This document shows, in pieces, positions 912 to 7,199 of a stretch of DNA of 64,000 nt; the stretch's first letter is position 1; every line of letters starts with the position of its first letter. The DNA comes from Eutreptiella sp. 'Long Island Sound 2002'. Lineage: Eukaryota > Protista > Euglenida. Made by a program: the position numbers and the translations under genes. The DNA is taken from contig OZ038378.1 of assembly GCA_964036045.1 (NCBI GenBank), positions 16,368,001 to 16,432,000 on the forward strand, given 5' to 3'. The notes under the pieces are model-generated. The model did no database searches. It had not been told where the DNA came from and saw nothing but the letters and a program-made list of their open reading frames with translations.

Positions 912-1457
912 AGGAAGGGGGGGGGGGGCTTGTGTGGGAGTGCGGAAAGTTCACGATTGCACAGGATTGCAGCCCCTTGGCGTCCAGTACCATGCCAGAT
1001 GGGGGGCGATAGGGTGCAGGCTGTCTGCTTCTCAGCTGACCCATGTGTGCGGCTAGAGAGTTGTTCTGCGAGAGAGTGATGGGCCAAGACCGGACAATTT
1101 TCCTGCGTGCTGTTGTCTTTTGGTCAAGTCCAGCGCTTCAGTGTGGCCAGTGAAGTCAGGAAAATCAGGGGAATCTTTGAAGTTTTTGTCGATAAATCGG
1201 AGGGCAGTTGACGGCTGTGTGCAGCTAGTTCCCCCAGCGGAATTGGCAATGAAGTGGCCTTTTTTTGTGTGCATTGGGCACGGGTTATGTCACGGGGCAT
1301 TGTAAGAGATACTGAAACCCAAAGGGGAAGTCGGACAGAAAACGTGGTAGTGTAATCGATAAGTGGTACTGCAGGGTGTCAGTACAATCACACTGTACCC
1401 AAAATGTCCAGACACTACACAATACTCCCTGCATTACACATGATATCCACGTTGCAG

Positions 1458-1519
1458 ACCTCACACGGTTAGTTTCGCCGAGCGGACGTCAGCAGTACGT
1501 TTTCGAATCTCGTAGTAAG
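1458..1519 (+). CDS. Candidate internal exon of the TIR-TM gene (LTRLVSPSGRQQYVFESRSK)
   Basis: Acceptor gttgcAG at 1457 and donor GTGGCA at 1520. The 62-nt exon is open and ends in phase 0, matching the acceptor at 2642. Confidence 0.4.
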
Positions 1520-2642
1520 GTGGCAGGGACCAGTGTACACAAAGTCACATGAGGCACTATGTTGCAACTATGCTACACAGCAGGCCCAGTTCAGTGCATT
1601 GCACTCATGGCTATTGGTGTCTTTGTGCCCGCTTTGTGTGATGGTGCATTGCATGTTCTTTTATCTACCGCGGTTATGGGGTCATTTTCATGGTAATGGG
1701 TCATTTGTTGGAAGTTGGGGTGGACGATGATTTTTGGACGTGCCGCATCTCGGTAACGAATCGCTGACACACAGACACACATTTCAACTGCTGAAGACAA
1801 CCACTACCATCATCATCGAGTACCAATTTGTGCACTCGGTTACAACATTTTAGGTTTTCTTCAAGCAAGATCTACTGAACTGTGTTACTGGTAGCCCGCG
1901 CTTTCGCATGCGGATACGCATCTGCTTGCAGCCCAAATCCCACATTTCCCTGTGGTGACAGCAGTTACACATGTGGTGACAGGGTGGTAACACATTGCTC
2001 ATCTTTTTTGCCGTTCAAAAGCAAAGATTTGGCTATTTCTCAAACATGAAAACAGGGTAAAAAGGCGTTCCCGGAACCCCATTCACAACCATGTACGTAA
2101 CTCAGATAAAGGAATATGATGTTCTTTCATCATCATTGCCAACGAAGTTTCTGTGAAGGTCCAAGGTGGTACCCCGCCGTTTTGTTTCTCCGTCTCTGCG
2201 CATGAGTGTAGGATGACACATGCATGTGCGTTGGGTCTGTGCGTGTGATTGCAACCTGCACCGTGGCCTCAATGTTCCGAAAACAGAGATGTCTCATGAG
2301 TTTTGGCGCCACTTCGGCTGGTCCGTTGCCTTGTGCTGATCTTGTGTGCCTGAAGAGGACCGTTGGCCGTGGGGATCATTGATATTACAATTGAGGTTGG
2401 CTGAGCCTAGTTGTATTGTCCTGCTTCCGTGATCTTTTGCTTTTGGGTTTGATTAAGATTCAATACCTGCTGACCACTAATGCACCCCACAATGTGCTTT
2501 ATGGGATCACGCAAGCCATGGCAGCCAGTTGAGTGCAGTTTGTAGGTGTGTTTTGGGGGTGATGTCCGTCATTTGTGAAAAACTGTGCTTGGTTGGTGCG
2601 TGTGCGGGGGGTCAAGGTGCTTCAGATTCGGTTCCCTTCCAG

Positions 2643-4829
2643 CTTTTTGTGATGCCGCAAGTTTGTGACGTGGAGCAAGCGTTTCAGGCCTCCAACGATG
2701 CTATTTCTCGGTCATCTATCCCTCTGCTTTGGCATGGACAGCCCACGTGGATTTTGCCACACCACCGGCAAGCCCTGAAACGCTTAACCGCTCGCCGCAG
2801 CCGACCTGCCCACGTCGTTGTGCCAGGACTGCTGGTTGTCATGCGATTTGGCACGCTGTACTTAGCGATGCAACTACCCGCTTTTGGAGAAAAGAAGTGG
2901 CACTCCGCCTTGCTTCTTGCGGACCTTCTTTTTGTCCTCCTGCTGGCAGCTTTCATCATCAGTGCGATTCCGAAGACTGCCACGCAGCTCGCACATGGGC
3001 TGTTCTCAGGCTCCAGGGCCGGGACCTTCTTTGTTTCTTACTGCTGGGGTGATGGCATGGAGACTGCCCACCACATCGCCCGCCTGTTCCCCTTTGAGAC
3101 CCGCTGGCTGGATATCGAGAAGCTGCTCCCGGGCTCCCAAATTGCCGAGGAGTGCCCAGCAGCTGCGGCCCATTCCGAGGCACGGTTTGCCCTCGTGTCC
3201 GATGCGTACCTCCGAAGTCGCAATTGTGGTCTGGAGTGGGCGCAGCTCAGCAAAGATGCAGAACAGGCCGCGAAGAGCATCTTGCTGCTGTGGCCCGGGG
3301 AGCGGTCCACCCCCGAAGAGGTCCACAAGCTGCAGAGCGCCGGGCACTACACAGTCCTGCTGAACAAACTGGCGAGGGATGGGGCCCGAAGCTGGAGGTA
3401 CTGGCTCAAGCCCGCGGGCTACGACACGCGCTTCAGCATGAGCATGACCCACTTCGATGTCTTCAACTGCCTGATGACGTCGGGGGTAGGGCACGCCGTC
3501 CTGCGCCGGCGCAGCCCCGTCATGAACGGGAACTGGTTCTCTGAGTCCAACATGTCCCGGCCGCTGTACAGCCACATCGCGCTGTCGATTGCCCTGCCCC
3601 TGCTGGGGCTGCACGCCGTGGTCATCCTGGGCACCATCATCTTCACCCGCGGAATATTCAGTGAGACTCTCGCGACCCCTCCGGCGGGCGAGACAGCAGA
3701 CGTGGTGCAATCCATCGACGACACAATCAACGACGACACCAACGCGAGCGCGTACCAGTTTGCCATCATCACACTCACCCTCCTGAGCGCGGCGTTCTCA
3801 GTGCTCATCACCCTGTTTCTGTTGCGCCGTGGTGCCTGGCGGCGCCTCAACCAGCCCGAGCTGGGGTGGCTCCTGATCCTGCTCCACAACATCGGCGTCA
3901 TCCCGATGCGGAGCCGCCCATACTGCGAGGGTGAGACGCAGGGCGCAGTGCCGTATGTTGTGGATCACTTTGAGGGCGTGGTGCGGGACGTTCTGCAGCC
4001 GCTAATCGACGAGGGCGTTGTGAAGATCCTCTCGCCGTCTCATGTGCTGGCGGCGGAGACGGCAGGCTTGCTGCTTGTGGACGACTTGGGGGACGCGCCG
4101 GAGGCAGAAAGCAACAAGATTTATTGGTCCCGTCAGACGGACTATGGGGCCATGAGTGAGGCGTACCGCAAGGCATTTGCTGGATCTATGATCAAAATGG
4201 GGCAGCAGCCCCATCCAAATGTGATTCTGAGCTCTGTGTTGGCGCAAGGGCTGGGCTGCTCGATGAAGCACTTGACCATGGGCCAGGGAGGCCTCCCAGG
4301 GCTGCTGCCGGACGAGCTGCTGTCGTCCACTGTCCGCTTCTTAGGCAAGTCTGGCGGCCGTGGGCGCCTCGTCCAGGCCATTTTGCTTTTCCTTTTCTGC
4401 GTCGCTCTGGCGTTCGCTATGTTCGCAGTGCTGTATGTGCCGATGTTCTTGGCGCAGGAATGCGAGCCTGACAGCCTCGAGCGCCAGGTGTTCGCGAAGG
4501 CATATCGCGAACTGGAGCGCCAGTGCGGCAATCTCTCGTGCAGACAGCTGAAGGACACGATAGTTCCTACGCCGGAGTACGACCTCCCCGCATGGATGGC
4601 CGTCAACGGATCGGAAGATGCAGTGGTCTTCACGGGCTGCGCGGTGGTTTTGCAGAACCTCAGCAGTGTGGTCGAGGCCTGTTTGCCTGCACTTGTGGCT
4701 GCGCCCACAGTTGGGTCGTGGCGCTTCAACATCACTTTATATAACCGCATCGTGTGTCCGCTCAGCACCTGTGTGCCTGCGGCCTTCAAACCGCTGGCCT
4801 GCACGGTTTGGGGCACGGGCGATCAGTAA
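2643..4829 (+). CDS. Large terminal exon of a multi-pass membrane protein with an internal TIR (TIR_2-like) domain and a Cys-rich, probably extracellular C-terminus
   Basis: The 766-codon open frame (2529-4829) is GC-rich and gene-like from the acceptor ttcccttccAG at 2642; first in-frame ATG is at 2652. TIR-like motifs: FFVSYCW (3027), WLDIEKL, ALVSDAYLRSRNCGLEW. There are about 5 hydrophobic segments and NxS/T sequons in the C-terminal Cys-rich part. Ends at TAA 4827-4829. Confidence 0.85.
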   Translation, partial: LFVMPQVCDVEQAFQASNDAISRSSIPLLWHGQPTWILPHHRQALKRLTARRSRPAHVVVPGLLVVMRFGTLYLAMQLPAFGEKKWHSALLLADLLFVLLLAAFIISAIPKTATQLAHGLFSGSRAGTFFVSYCWGDGMETAHHIARLFPFETRWLDIEKLLPGSQIAEECPAAAAHSEARFALVSDAYLRSRNCGLEWAQLSKDAEQAAKSILLLWPGERSTPEEVHKLQSAGHYTVLLNKLARDGARSWRYWLKPAGYDTRFSMSMTHFDVFNCLMTSGVGHAVLRRRSPVMNGNWFSESNMSRPLYSHIALSIALPLLGLHAVVILGTIIFTRGIFSETLATPPAGETADVVQSIDDTINDDTNASAYQFAIITLTLLSAAFSVLITLFLLRRGAWRRLNQPELGWLLILLHNIGVIPMRSRPYCEGETQGAVPYVVDHFEGVVRDVLQPLIDEGVVKILSPSHVLAAETAGLLLVDDLGDAPEAESNKIYWSRQTDYGAMSEAYRKAFAGSMIKMGQQPHPNVILSSVLAQGLGCSMKHLTMGQGGLPGLLPDELLSSTVRFLGKSGGRGRLVQAILLFLFCVALAFAMFAVLYVPMFLAQECEPDSLERQVFAKAYRELERQCGNLSCRQLKDTIVPTPEYDLPAWMAVNGSEDAVVFTGCAVVLQNLSSVVEACLPALVAAPTVGSWRFNITLYNRIVCPLSTCVPAAFKPLACTVWGTGDQ

Positions 4830-6261
4830 CGCGATTCCTGCGTCGCCGCATGCGTCGCTTTTGACCTGCGTGGCTGTGCATTGTCCCACTGGTGCATGCC
4901 GAACACTCTTCACCCCCGAACCCCCAGCCACGCCATCAAGCGAGGGTCACCACGAGATCCAGGAGGTCCCAGTTACCCCCGATGCCTGAATCGCGGTCAA
5001 AGGAGGCGGGCCAGGCGTCCTAGTGTGTTCTGTGCTGCGGGGGCTCTGCAAGGGGCAGGTGGTTTGAGGACACCGGGATGCCCCGGGGACGCTGCGGCGG
5101 CGTATCTGCCACCGGCAGTGGGGTTTGAGCAGTGCGCTGTGGTGTGCAGTGCACGTGGTGCACGGATGCAGGAAGCGGTGCACTGCCACTCTGCTGTACT
5201 GCCTCAGTGCATCGCAATGCTTTGCAGGTGTAGCGCAGGAGTGCTGTTGCCTGGTGCATTGCGAGGGTGGTGCGCGGTCACCTGGTGCAAGAAGTGGCAC
5301 GCCTGTCAATGCATCCCCCACGGTATGTTCTGACAGACGGACAGTGTAGGACATAAGCGCACACACACTTCATCCGGGCGGCCTCTCCCGCAAAGCGCCC
5401 TGCTGGGCACGCCTACCCCCTCTTGCCCTGCGAATTTCAACCAGATCAAGCCATGCAGCCCTGTTGCTGTAAAGTGCGGTACAACATGGCCGCTTTCCTG
5501 CGAAGTCCTGCTTAATTGTTCGTTATGGCCCGACTGGTGGTCGCATGCAAAACCAGTGCCCTACCCCCATCACAGTGCAAAAATTGCCACCCGCATTGCG
5601 AGTACGGATGCCTGCCGCTGTAGCGCAGGTGAACTGCCCTGTGGAGCAGGGGCCCAGCGAAACCACGAAACAGAAGTGCACTGGAAACCCCCCTTGCCAA
5701 TGAAATCGGGGAACGGTTGGTGCACATTTCACGCGAGCGCAGCGCTCATGCACTGCGCCATGGCAGTATGAGGCAGCAGTGCATTACGATTGGCAGCTGC
5801 ACCACTGACTGCCCTTGGGTAGCAGTGCACAGCTCCCGCATCATACCCAGTGGCAATCAATGGGAATCCGCCGCCCACGCACTGCATCAGTGGCCAGTGG
5901 CAATCCGCGGCTCTAAATCAGCTTCAGATGGTGGTGCAATGCTCCTGCACTACGTCAAGTGCATGCGACCGTACGATGTCATGCGCGTGCGTGCACCGGA
6001 ACATTGCGGACTCGTTACCTTTCTTCAACCCAAACCTTCAAATTGGGTAAGAGGATTTGCGGGATTGCAAGAAGGGGTGCAACATGGATCCAAAGTTTGA
6101 ATGGACCACCATGCATTGGATTTTGTGCGGCCCCATGGAGAGTATTTTGGAATCCCTCCCCTAGAGAATCCCCCCTAGAGAGCAATAATCGCATGTACAG
6201 TACCAGATGGAGAAACAATGACCTCATAACCGAAGTTCGATGAAATGAATGTTGTATCCCA

Positions 6262-6514
6262 GTTGCTGCTGCTGCTGCTGATGGTGCTGCTTTGGGTGTT
6301 GTTGTTGTCGTTGTTGTCGTTGTCGTTGTTTGTGTTGCGCTGCTGCTGCTGCTGCTGCTGCTGCTGGTTGTCTTTTGGTTTCTGTTGATATTGATGCTTC
6401 TGCTGTTTTCATTTTTGTTATTTGTGCTGCCCCTTCTGCTGTTGCTCTGGTGGTGGTGGTGGTGGTGGTGGTGTGATTGTTGGCTGCTGCTGCTGCTGCT
6501 GCCGCCGCTGCTGC
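6262..6514 (+). repeat. Compound trinucleotide microsatellite (GCT/GTT/GTC/GGT)
   Basis: Seen directly; it is the source of the poly-V/L/W and poly-A/Q/T/H spurious ORFs. Confidence 0.97.
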
Positions 6515-7199
6515 CCCACAGCATGACCGCACAGTACTGCTGGAAGCAGGAGGCCAGGATTCTCTTCCCCCATATACCCAGCACCCCCAAAGAGGCTCAG
6601 ACTTCAGCCATAACCAGACCCCTTCGGGCCCTGCCAGTGGTGCCCATTGATCTATATGTCTGATATTGCATGTTTTAGCCTGAATGTGTCCGACACTAGG
6701 ACTCATAGAGGATGCAGTCCTGTCCAACACAGAATGGCCACATGCTCTGGCCTGAAGAAGTTCGACCTTAACCGAAATTCCGGTGTGCGTTTGTGACAGG
6801 AAGCGAGTGCAAACACATGTCCCAAGGACGTGCATCAAGTAGGTATGGGCTTGGAGTATTGAAGTCACACAATAGACACACGAATGCAGAATGGCCGAAT
6901 TGGCTCTTGGACTGCGGACACCCGTTGGTCCTCCGACATGCACGCATGCAGGGGGGGCTCCACCCGTGGGCTCGACCCACAAAACGGTGCACAAGATAGT
7001 GGAGAGCTATTATCAAGGGGATGACATTTTGGAATAGTGACCCGCCGCTCCTGGGCTCGATAAATGATGCAAACGACAACGTCTTCGAGTTCTATGTTCC
7101 CCGATTTAGATAGAGCATATATTGTTTCGGCTGATTTGGCGCTTCAAGTTAGTGCCAGTTTTCCAGTTAGTGCTATCCATGAGCAACTCTTATTTTCAC

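Follow-up and report, generated by a model that had tools for sequence, protein, structure and literature searches.

A membrane-embedded TIR protein of a Euglena-like alga with a catalytic-position Glu, and the protist family to which it belongs

The window analysed here, a stretch of 64,000 nucleotides from Eutreptiella sp., contains a real, intronless, single-copy gene of this Euglena-like alga which is probably transcribed and encodes a 725-residue membrane protein with a TIR domain. The protein is a divergent, lone member of an apparently undescribed family that occurs in distant protist groups and has the order TM-TIR-TM(-D2), in which TM stands for transmembrane segments and D2 for a second conserved domain. 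In our main reading, to which we give a probability of roughly 0.55, the gene product crosses the membrane five times in the order TM-TIR-TM-D2 and carries a cytosolic TIR domain whose cleavage of NAD(P)+ is switched at the membrane. The protein is a candidate for an immune or sensory role, which the first-pass annotation had put forward together with gating by a ligand or by infection.

Open reading frame analysis identifies a frame of 766 codons without interruption at 2529-4829 of the plus strand, to which all coordinates below refer. The likely start codon is the ATG at 2652, from which residues are counted here (q numbering), and the coding sequence of 2652-4829, including the stop, is delineated by the open frame, the bias in third-position GC (GC3) and RNA contigs, with no intron detected. 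An alternative in-frame start at the ATG at 2562 is possible. Direct reading of the sequence reveals a pyrimidine-rich, acceptor-like site at 2632-2642, the AG of which ends 9 nucleotides upstream of ATG 2652 and which is a candidate site for spliced-leader addition; addition at 2642 is a prediction, since no junction read was seen, and the window contains no match to a spliced-leader pattern, no tRNA and no Rfam family. The first-pass annotation had begun the gene at 2643, which is indeed the base directly after this AG, while the likely ATG is located at 2652 instead. GC3 is 0.75 inside the ORF against a GC2 of 0.45, and by stretch it rises from about 0.45 upstream to 0.57-0.62 over the first 360 nucleotides and 0.68-0.92 between 3012 and the stop. 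Three estuary metatranscriptomes, whose contigs can contain DNA, provide contigs that are colinear with the genome over 2657-3075, 3141-3343 and 3467-4157 without a single difference or joint. The first of these contigs begins at 2657 with none on 1200-2656, and RNA contigs cover only about 340 nucleotides of the flanks (about 3.4 kb). In the RNA runs searched there is no match to 4160-4829, and the support for the last third of the ORF is its codon bias; the DNA contig is even across 1200-6254. An intron at 4156 (GTGAG) was considered and rejected, as the homology of D2 continues in frame across the site, where there is no joint or loose end. The window yields no paralogue, and the ORFs flanking the CDS match no Pfam family.

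The protein is composed, in order, of TM1-TM2, the TIR domain, TM3-TM4, D2, TM5 and a Cys-rich tail. Kyte-Doolittle hydropathy and AlphaFold2 (AF2) helices agree on the five TM segments, which span q55-77, q83-106, q305-340, q362-399 and q571-603. The first hairpin, TM1 and TM2 (2814-2969), has hydropathy peaks of 1.88 and 2.78, AF2 helices at 56-77 and 83-104 and a short outer loop, and the second, TM3 and TM4 (3564-3848; peaks of 2.39 and 2.42, likewise with AF2 helices), has an acidic outer loop with one N-x-S/T site. TM5, with its hydropathy core at q576-594 (4377-4433), reaches a peak of 2.97, the maximum of the protein, and is modelled by AF2 as a helix at 571-603. The 131-residue tail that follows (4434-4826; GC3 0.72-0.78) counts 8 Cys and 4 N-x-S/T sites, has a pLDDT below 40 in the AF2 model and has no relative in a scan of 1.84 billion proteins nor in the Atlas. 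It is lineage-specific and predicted to face outward or into the lumen. Five of the six N-x-S/T sites in the protein lie on the predicted outer face and 8 of the 16 Cys within the last 131 residues, such that the part predicted to lie outside, 24% of the protein, holds 5/6 sequons and half of the Cys (binomial p about 0.004). Across 13 family members the content of Lys and Arg per residue is 0.125 on the TIR side against 0.070 in the loops that connect TM1 with TM2 and TM3 with TM4, and that of Asp and Glu is reversed. Hydropathy and charge bias, which stand in for a dedicated topology predictor, suggest that TIR and D2 are cytosolic and that the short loops and the tail point outward or into the lumen; the N-terminus is cytosolic in the five-pass layout. 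This bears out the order of TM hairpin, TIR, TM hairpin, soluble region, TM helix and Cys-rich C-terminus that the first-pass annotation had described, including several NxS/T sequons in the C-terminus, of which we count four, and the positive-inside rule places the TIR in the cytosol, as that reading requires.

The TIR domain (q119-289; 3006-3518), delimited by Pfam TIR_2, AF2 and VIA-align, contains a disordered insert at q245-266. Pfam TIR_2 matches q126-221 (3027-3314) with 37.8 bits (cutoff 28; E 3.1e-9), and the pLDDT exceeds 90 over q110-245 of the AF2 model. By VIA-align, model residues 119-289 have Z scores of 12.4 with MAL, 12.3 with Hydra TRR-2, 12.1 with the SARM1 TIR and 11.2 with AbTir, and the model has the flavodoxin-like, five-stranded alpha/beta fold of TIR domains. 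Foldseek with the 725-residue model returns TIR rows with a probability of about 1 but with E above 0.02; these E values are weak because the query is so long, and the VIA-align figures are used instead. The motifs FFVSYCW (q126-132), WLDIEKL (q152-158) and ALVSDAYLRSRNCGLEW (q180-196), by which the domain was originally recognised, are all present in the translation, and its identity as a TIR has withstood both the HMM search and the structural comparison. Among PDB sequences the family profile matches Cat1 (E 1.3e-7) and PdTIR (1.3e-6), with plant TIRs also at the top and TLR and MyD88 lower, and the BB loop reads 'L-x-P-G', like the Pro-Gly of TLRs. PADLOC has no match for the protein, the sole match in NCBIfam is a sub-threshold one to FxsC TIR-like, and the Atlas feature search with the whole protein returns generic TIR clusters only (score 0.77). 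A weak match to NadC (quinolinate phosphoribosyltransferase; E 0.17-0.7) is taken as chance.

Glu195, encoded by the codon at 3234-3236, occupies the place that the catalytic Glu of helix alpha-C has in NAD-cleaving TIRs, as the first reading of the sequence had proposed: in alignments to enzymatic TIRs it coincides with the Glu of ROQ1 'WCLEEL', Cat1 'WCWDEL' and L6 'WCLMEL' and with that of PdTIR. Glu195 and Ser189 are each kept in 49 of 50 aligned relatives, and Ser129, Tyr130, Trp152, Asp154, Gly161, Tyr186 and Cys192 are invariant in the 50 sequences. Four residues before the Glu, this protein and the majority of its family have Asn, with Ala, Ile or Ser in some members, at a position that is Trp in every alignment shown with Cat1, PdTIR, ROQ1, L6 and a plant TIR (7xoz). 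The protein consequently lacks the W-x-x-x-E pattern of enzymatic TIRs, in which Trp is typical, not universal, and the substitution may signify a change of substrate or a loss of activity. Since the domain retains the Ser-Asp-Glu constellation found in enzymatic TIRs, it most likely cleaves NAD(P)+, with nicotinamide and an ADP-ribose-type product as the predicted products.

The region after TM4, previously described as soluble, is soluble and beyond that description constitutes D2, a predicted cytosolic alpha/beta domain of an unnamed family (q435-560; 3954-4331). An HMM of D2 built from 14 relatives with the query excluded matches q444-549 with 41.3 bits (E 1.6e-11), the best of 2000 shuffles reaching 6.1 bits. 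The AF2 model of D2 is CheY/flavodoxin-like (Z 7.0, TM-score 0.57), and D2 has no Pfam family and no PDB sequence match. A decayed second TIR was rejected as the origin of D2, with an hhalign probability of 0.2% and no TIR among the 50 best fold matches. Fold and PDB sequence searches detect no relation of D2 to STING, SAVED or APAZ, and the Atlas feature search with D2 or the tail gives no usable match.

HMMER retrieves 47 relatives from the 1.84 billion proteins, found in five species of choanoflagellates, in Rhodelphis and in many environmental eukaryotes; those that are named come from Salpingoeca rosetta (PTSG_10286 and PTSG_13047), S. macrocollata, S. urceolata, Hartaetosiga balthica and Rhodelphis limneticus. 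The layout therefore extends beyond euglenids and spans distant protist groups. A TM segment lies upstream of the TIR in 34 of 35 long relatives and TM segments lie on either side in 29 of them, three relatives (P0023, P0024 and P0045) have a TM segment after D2 too, and TIR_2 is matched by all 28 relatives scanned against Pfam. Family alignments also reveal a juxtamembrane motif, S-P-x-I-N-E-x-W, adjoining TM3 (SPVMNGNW here; 3513-3536), which is absent from the PDB TIRs aligned. Its Trp295 is invariant in the 28 full-length relatives of alignment A1; of the 42 rows of alignment A3 that extend to this column, 40 have it, and in alignment A2 the conservation of the Pro and of the Trp is 90% or higher. 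The family signature reads F-M-V-S-Y-x-W, W-L-D-x-x-x-L-x-P-G, S-x-x-Y-L-x-S-x-N-C-x-x-E and S-P-x-I-N-E-x-W. In the euglenid protein the TIR is flanked by TM segments on either side, all of the invariant residues are present and D2 follows the second TM pair, which are the features by which membership in the family is judged; the protein forms a lone long branch in the family tree with a TIR identity to relatives of 21-32% (up to 47% over shorter stretches). Word-index protein searches with the full-length protein, with the alignment of the family and with the TIR region return only the protein itself, so no recorded relative exceeds about 50% identity, and in the scan of 1.84 billion proteins it is the only TIR protein of its own assembly. 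Our literature search found no description of the family, PTSG_13047 or PTSG_10286, nor, as the first-pass annotation had anticipated, any paper on TIR signalling in Euglenozoa, Euglena included.

The closest counterparts are the uncharacterised 'TIR domain-containing proteins' of choanoflagellates and Rhodelphis limneticus, which belong to the same family, share the TM flanks and the signature and in many cases have D2, and which lack the Cys-rich outer tail that the euglenid protein adds along with TM5. As noted from the outset, the layout is unlike that of TLRs, SARM1 and TNLs in that the TIR lies between TM2 and TM3. TirC of Dictyostelium is a membrane-tethered, filament-forming and active NADase with a catalytic Glu, thought to be restrained by its tether, and its TIR is a recent acquisition from bacterial TIR-STING that follows a single N-terminal helix (PMC13142454). 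Both proteins are protist TIRs with a Glu at the catalytic position and a membrane anchor, the NADase activity being demonstrated for TirC and predicted here; they differ in that the TIR of the present protein is pinned at both ends in a protein of 4-5 TM segments, comes from an old eukaryotic family and has D2 as a partner domain. The TIR of SARM1 is similar in fold (rmsd 3.3 Å over 124 residues) and, when aligned transitively via the TIR profile, has an equivalent Glu. However, the two sequences are about 11% identical, the Trp that precedes the Glu is Asn in the euglenid protein, in which Pfam finds neither ARM nor SAM, and SARM1 itself is not a polytopic membrane protein. Like the TLR and IL-1 receptors it is a membrane protein with a cytosolic TIR (predicted here), a Pro-Gly BB loop and a Cys-rich outer part with glycosylation (sequons only here). 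TLRs, in contrast, cross the membrane once in type I orientation, have an LRR or Ig ectodomain with the TIR at the C-terminus and signal through adaptors, whereas here the TIR is an internal loop among five TMs with enzymatic-type residues, and Pfam detects TIR_2 only and no LRR or Ig. The bacterial Cat1, of which the TIR is the best match of the family profile, TIR-STING, TIR-SAVED and SPARTA TIR-APAZ likewise combine a TIR with a second alpha/beta domain, but they are soluble proteins of prokaryotes whose genes lie in defence operons. Raw/OLRN-1, cADPR hydrolases with the order DD1-TIR1-DD2-TIR2 in which two TIRs form one pocket (PMC13455253), were rejected as the closest family, as there is a single TIR here and D2 is not TIR-like.

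The fold by itself would also suit a protein whose TIR serves as a scaffold without enzymatic activity, like those of TLRs, MyD88 and MAL; such a protein would nucleate TIR-TIR assemblies at a membrane and recruit other proteins, and its Glu would be a structural or interface residue. The adaptor TIRs of MAL and Hydra TRR-2 rank among the top fold matches, as high as enzyme TIRs, and the TLR-like BB loop and the missing Trp point the same way. Against this, the Glu, the beta-A Ser and the beta-B Asp are near-invariant across very distant taxa, the best sequence matches of the family profile are enzymatic TIRs, and the protein is the sole TIR protein of its assembly in the scan with no TIR partner gene in the window; we regard a scaffold as unlikely, albeit a reading of some weight. 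An active enzyme need not be a receptor and may instead be a housekeeping messenger synthase, that is, an endomembrane ADP-ribosyl cyclase or base-exchange enzyme that produces cADPR- or NAADP-like Ca2+ messengers. Exactly such reactions are carried out by the SARM1 TIR (PMC13455253). There is a single copy of the gene, and the family shows conservation without the expansion that is usual for immune receptors. Also in favour is a membrane-bound ADP-ribosyl cyclase activity of Euglena gracilis, reportedly described by Masuda et al. in the late 1990s, for which we know of no identified gene. That enzyme is said to have a size of about 40 kDa, against the roughly 80 kDa predicted here, and the long branch and lineage-specific outer tail fit a sensor better, which makes a purely housekeeping function rather improbable.

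A TIR facing the lumen or the outside, as in an ecto-NADase like CD38, could arise from a start at ATG 2562, which would add 30 moderately hydrophobic residues (peak 1.97) and with them a possible signal or anchor that flips the topology, and one sequon (q300) adjoins the TIR. This reversed orientation is very unlikely given the charge bias in 13 family members, the location of the other sequons and the Cys cluster on the opposite face, the Glu and Lys within the upstream segment, its low third-position GC (0.48) and the start of the RNA contig at 2657. That the ORF is dead, a product of chance or the result of misassembly is scarcely credible, although the protein is without a close relative and the last 670 nucleotides are without RNA support: the 766 codons are open with a codon bias that continues up to the stop, the family-invariant residues are all intact, the two conserved domains are in register, the RNA contigs are 100% identical and the DNA contig is even.

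Known TIR enzymes are active only once their TIRs pack side by side. For a five-pass protein that cleaves NAD(P)+, our main reading, the anchoring of the TIR to the membrane at both ends would allow activity to be switched by lateral clustering or by a rearrangement of the TM bundle. The trigger may act on the outer parts, here the added tail, or on D2, and the output could be a messenger for Ca2+ or defence signalling or a depletion of NAD that leads to cell death. More speculatively, and in our view doubtful, TM-TIR-TM-D2 proteins might be ancient eukaryotic membrane enzymes that convert NAD(P), predate TLRs and are independent of them, and that in euglenids are either the gene behind the membrane-bound ADP-ribosyl cyclase activity, which supplies cADPR for Ca2+ signalling, or a cell-autonomous immune sensor-executor of protists in which D2 senses the ligand.

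TIR domains play a central part in the immunity of bacteria, plants and animals. A survey from 2026 found that the majority of eukaryote-only TIR clades are wholly unstudied (PMC13142454). One such group is now delimited by its architecture and signature, with the TIR between two TM hairpins followed by the new conserved domain D2, and ranges over euglenids, Rhodelphis and choanoflagellates. We know of no CD38 homologue reported in the protist lineages that have the family, which is a candidate source of cADPR-type messengers in them. If active, these proteins would represent a third mode of coupling TIRs to the membrane, in addition to receptors of the TLR type and to tethered TIRs like TirC. 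Choanoflagellates are the closest relatives of animals. One of them, Salpingoeca rosetta, is genetically tractable, so that the production of NAD-derived signals by a membrane-embedded TIR, and its trigger, can be tested in protists.

The window protein is a membrane TIR protein of 725 amino acids encoded on the forward strand (2652-4829; q denotes residues counted from the ATG at 2652). Hydropathy and an AlphaFold2 model (50 family sequences as input; mean pLDDT 67, pTM 0.63) give the same order of parts, in which a disordered N-terminus (q1-54) is followed by TM1 (q55-77), TM2 (q83-106), the TIR domain (q119-289, pLDDT above 90, with a disordered insert at q245-266), TM3 (q305-340), an acidic loop with one sequon (about q341-361), TM4 (q362-399), an alpha/beta domain termed D2 (q435-545, pLDDT 81-92), TM5 (q571-603) and a tail with eight cysteines and four N-x-S/T sequons (q595-725, pLDDT below 40). 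This confirms the layout proposed in the first-pass annotation, a TIR between TM pairs followed by a soluble region, a further TM segment and a Cys-rich tail. The 131-residue tail has no relative in a HMMER scan of 1.84 billion proteins, in a search within the family set or in the Atlas; TM segments after D2 also terminate three other family proteins (P0023, P0024 and P0045).

The TIR fold claimed earlier is borne out by a Pfam TIR_2 match above the cutoff of 28 bits (37.8 bits, E 3.1e-9) and by structural matches to known TIRs. VIA-align superimposes the model onto PDB chains of MAL (Z 12.4), Hydra TRR-2 (Z 12.3), the SARM1 TIR (Z 12.1, rmsd 3.3 Å over 124 residues) and AbTir (Z 11.2), all spanning model residues of about 119-289. 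A profile of 33 family TIRs compared with the PDB matches Cat1 best (1.3e-7), then PdTIR (1.3e-6) and a plant TIR annotated as an ADP-ribosyl cyclase (9.4e-6), followed in order by ROQ1, RPP1, L6, SNC1 and RUN1; TLRs and MyD88 match more weakly than Cat1, PdTIR and the plant TIRs. In profile alignments the family motif N-C-x-x-E pairs with W-C-L-E-E-L (ROQ1) and W-C-W-D-E-L (Cat1), and in a single-sequence alignment with W-C-L-M-E-L (L6), which places Glu195 (3234-3236) at the catalytic position, as had been predicted. Glu195 and Ser189 are each kept in 49 of 50 aligned relatives, and Ser129, Tyr130, Trp152, Asp154, Gly161, Tyr186 and Cys192 are invariant. All aligned enzyme TIRs, ROQ1, Cat1 and L6 among them, carry a Trp four residues before the Glu, whereas most members of the protist family have Asn there. 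The start of the TIR region (2964-3380, q105-237) also shows a weak likeness to NadC, quinolinate phosphoribosyltransferase (PDB 3paj and 1qap, E 0.17-0.7), which is probably due to chance, though NadC is another enzyme of NAD metabolism.

By sequence, the window protein is a member of a protist family and no isolated oddity. In an exhaustive HMMER search, 1.84 billion representatives yielded 47 relatives (E 9e-19 to 1e-3), and all those with a name are eukaryotic: PTSG_10286 and PTSG_13047 of Salpingoeca rosetta, proteins of S. macrocollata, S. urceolata, Hartaetosiga balthica and Rhodelphis limneticus, one MMETSP transcript and two unnamed EukProt entries. The remainder lie on metagenome or metatranscriptome contigs which look eukaryotic where long enough, one having a zf-C2HC_2 neighbour and another a 1.77-kb tandem repeat. 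The latter is an array of at least four units of about 1.77 kb, immediately upstream of the family gene P0067 (L005:225-7817), and its three small ORFs recur in every unit. Among 35 relatives of at least 390 residues whose TIR is not N-terminal, a TM segment precedes the TIR in 34 and TM segments flank it on both sides in 29. The family signature comprises F-M-V-S-Y-x-W, L-P-R-x-x-A, W-L-D-x-x-x-L-x-P-G, R-F-V-F-x-S-x-x-Y-L-x-S-x-N-C-x-x-E, G-H-x-V and, immediately before TM3, S-P-x-I-N-E-x-W. In the TIR tree the choanoflagellate sequences form supported groups, and the branch of the window protein is long and stays unplaced. Word-index searches with the whole protein, the family alignment and the TIR region returned the window protein alone, which means that the records contain neither an orthologue nor an intronless paralogue of more than roughly 50% identity; the 64-kb window holds no paralogue either. 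On the environmental contig L003 the family gene P0007 (2031-3602, forward) lies 1.7 kb from a second TIR_2 gene (5316-6380, reverse) with an unannotated 341-residue ORF between them; the organism may thus carry its TIR genes in clusters.

The soluble region reported earlier is present, and is more than that, namely the conserved domain D2. Weak second matches at q473-555 recur in several relatives, and an iterative search inside the family set found D2 in 15 proteins, in each case C-terminal to the second TM pair. With the query left out, an HMM of 14 of these proteins matches the window protein at 41.3 bits (E 1.6e-11, q444-549), the best of 2000 shuffles reaching 6.1 bits. D2 has no Pfam family, no PDB relative by sequence and no relation to the TIR in a profile comparison. 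Modelled alone it forms a five-strand alpha/beta sandwich (pLDDT 70) whose nearest structural neighbours are CheY-type receiver domains (Z 7.0; Atlas TM 0.57), a level which by the tools' own guidance means a common fold and not kinship; a receiver-type acidic pocket is not conserved and the sole invariant residue is a Gly.

Across the 13 members in which the 2+2 TM segments are clear, K+R per residue is 0.099-0.149 on the N-terminal, TIR and D2 sides and 0.058-0.081 in the TM1-2 and TM3-4 loops, with D+E showing the opposite trend. The predicted outer 24% of the window protein holds five of six sequons and eight of 16 cysteines. From this charge bias and the sequon and Cys placement, the TIR and D2 are most likely cytosolic and the tail outward or luminal; the 13-member bias thus upholds a TIR on the cytosolic, not the luminal, side of the membrane. 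NAD+ is located in the cytosol.

The open frame on the forward strand spans 2529-4829 (766 codons). An in-frame ATG at 2562 is an alternative start, used by the gene caller for the 755-residue database entry (P0001). The start is likely the ATG at 2652, judging from a pyrimidine-rich, acceptor-like tract (ttcccttccag) ending at 2642, 9 nt upstream, and from the first RNA contig position. GC3 is about 0.45-0.48 upstream, climbs to 0.57-0.92 within the ORF and is flat beyond the stop (GC1/GC2/GC3 of the whole ORF 0.62/0.45/0.75). RNA contigs from three estuary metatranscriptome runs cover 2657-3075, 3141-3343, 3467-4113, 3834-4008 and 4006-4157 with no difference, gap or joint relative to the genome, and none from these runs aligns to 1200-2656. 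One DNA-type contig spans 1200-6254 with even coverage. The evidence speaks for a gene that is transcribed and lacks introns, with the reservation that metatranscriptome libraries can contain DNA. A GTGAG at 4156 was considered as a splice site and rejected because in-frame D2 homology crosses it and no loose end is reported. In a k-mer check the tail-coding stretch 4160-4829 occurs in no RNA run; 32% of its sampled 31-mers are present in run X12 of another study, labelled as another organism ('organism B'), so that a near-identical copy is present in a close relative or strain. Within 1200-6254, RNA downstream of the stop is confined to 5065-5253 and 5940-6090, exact matches of metatranscriptome contigs (runs X1 and X3) with no ORF of a Pfam family; these patches may represent either a long 3' UTR belonging to the TIR gene or an independent non-coding transcript. 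A simple-repeat block at 6255-6520, where the DNA contig breaks and which was excluded as a repeat from the read comparison, would translate, according to frame, into poly-Ser, poly-Thr, poly-His, poly-Gln, poly-Ala or poly-Val, with ORFs at 6015-6994 on both strands. No spliced-leader copy, tRNA or Rfam family was found in the 64-kb window.

Literature searches found no publication on TM-TIR-TM proteins, on PTSG_10286 and PTSG_13047, or on any TIR domain of Euglena or Euglenozoa, in agreement with the earlier remark that no description of TIR-based signalling in Euglenozoa was known. A choanoflagellate survey covers only TLRs, kinase-TLRs, SARM1 and soluble TIR proteins, and a 2026 atlas of eukaryotic TIRs holds uncharacterised, eukaryote-only clades (3 and 9-13; PMC13142454). 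The protist TM-TIR-TM family probably falls inside one of these clades.

In SARM1, plant resistosomes, AbTir, TIR-STING and SPARTA the active site forms only when TIRs pack together. The simplest working model for the window protein, by analogy, is an enzyme whose TIR, anchored in the membrane at both ends and adjoining D2, would cleave NAD(P)+ with clustering or a rearranged TM bundle as the switch, the trigger arriving from outside via the tail or loops, or through D2. A membrane-bound ADP-ribosyl cyclase activity occurs in Euglena gracilis and, to our knowledge, has not been tied to a gene; the size of that enzyme, about 40 kDa, does not fit the window protein. Dictyostelium TirC is an active protist TIR NADase that can be restrained by its membrane tether (PMC13142454). 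The predicted role of the Eutreptiella protein could be in defence or cell death, or in the synthesis of a Ca2+ messenger.
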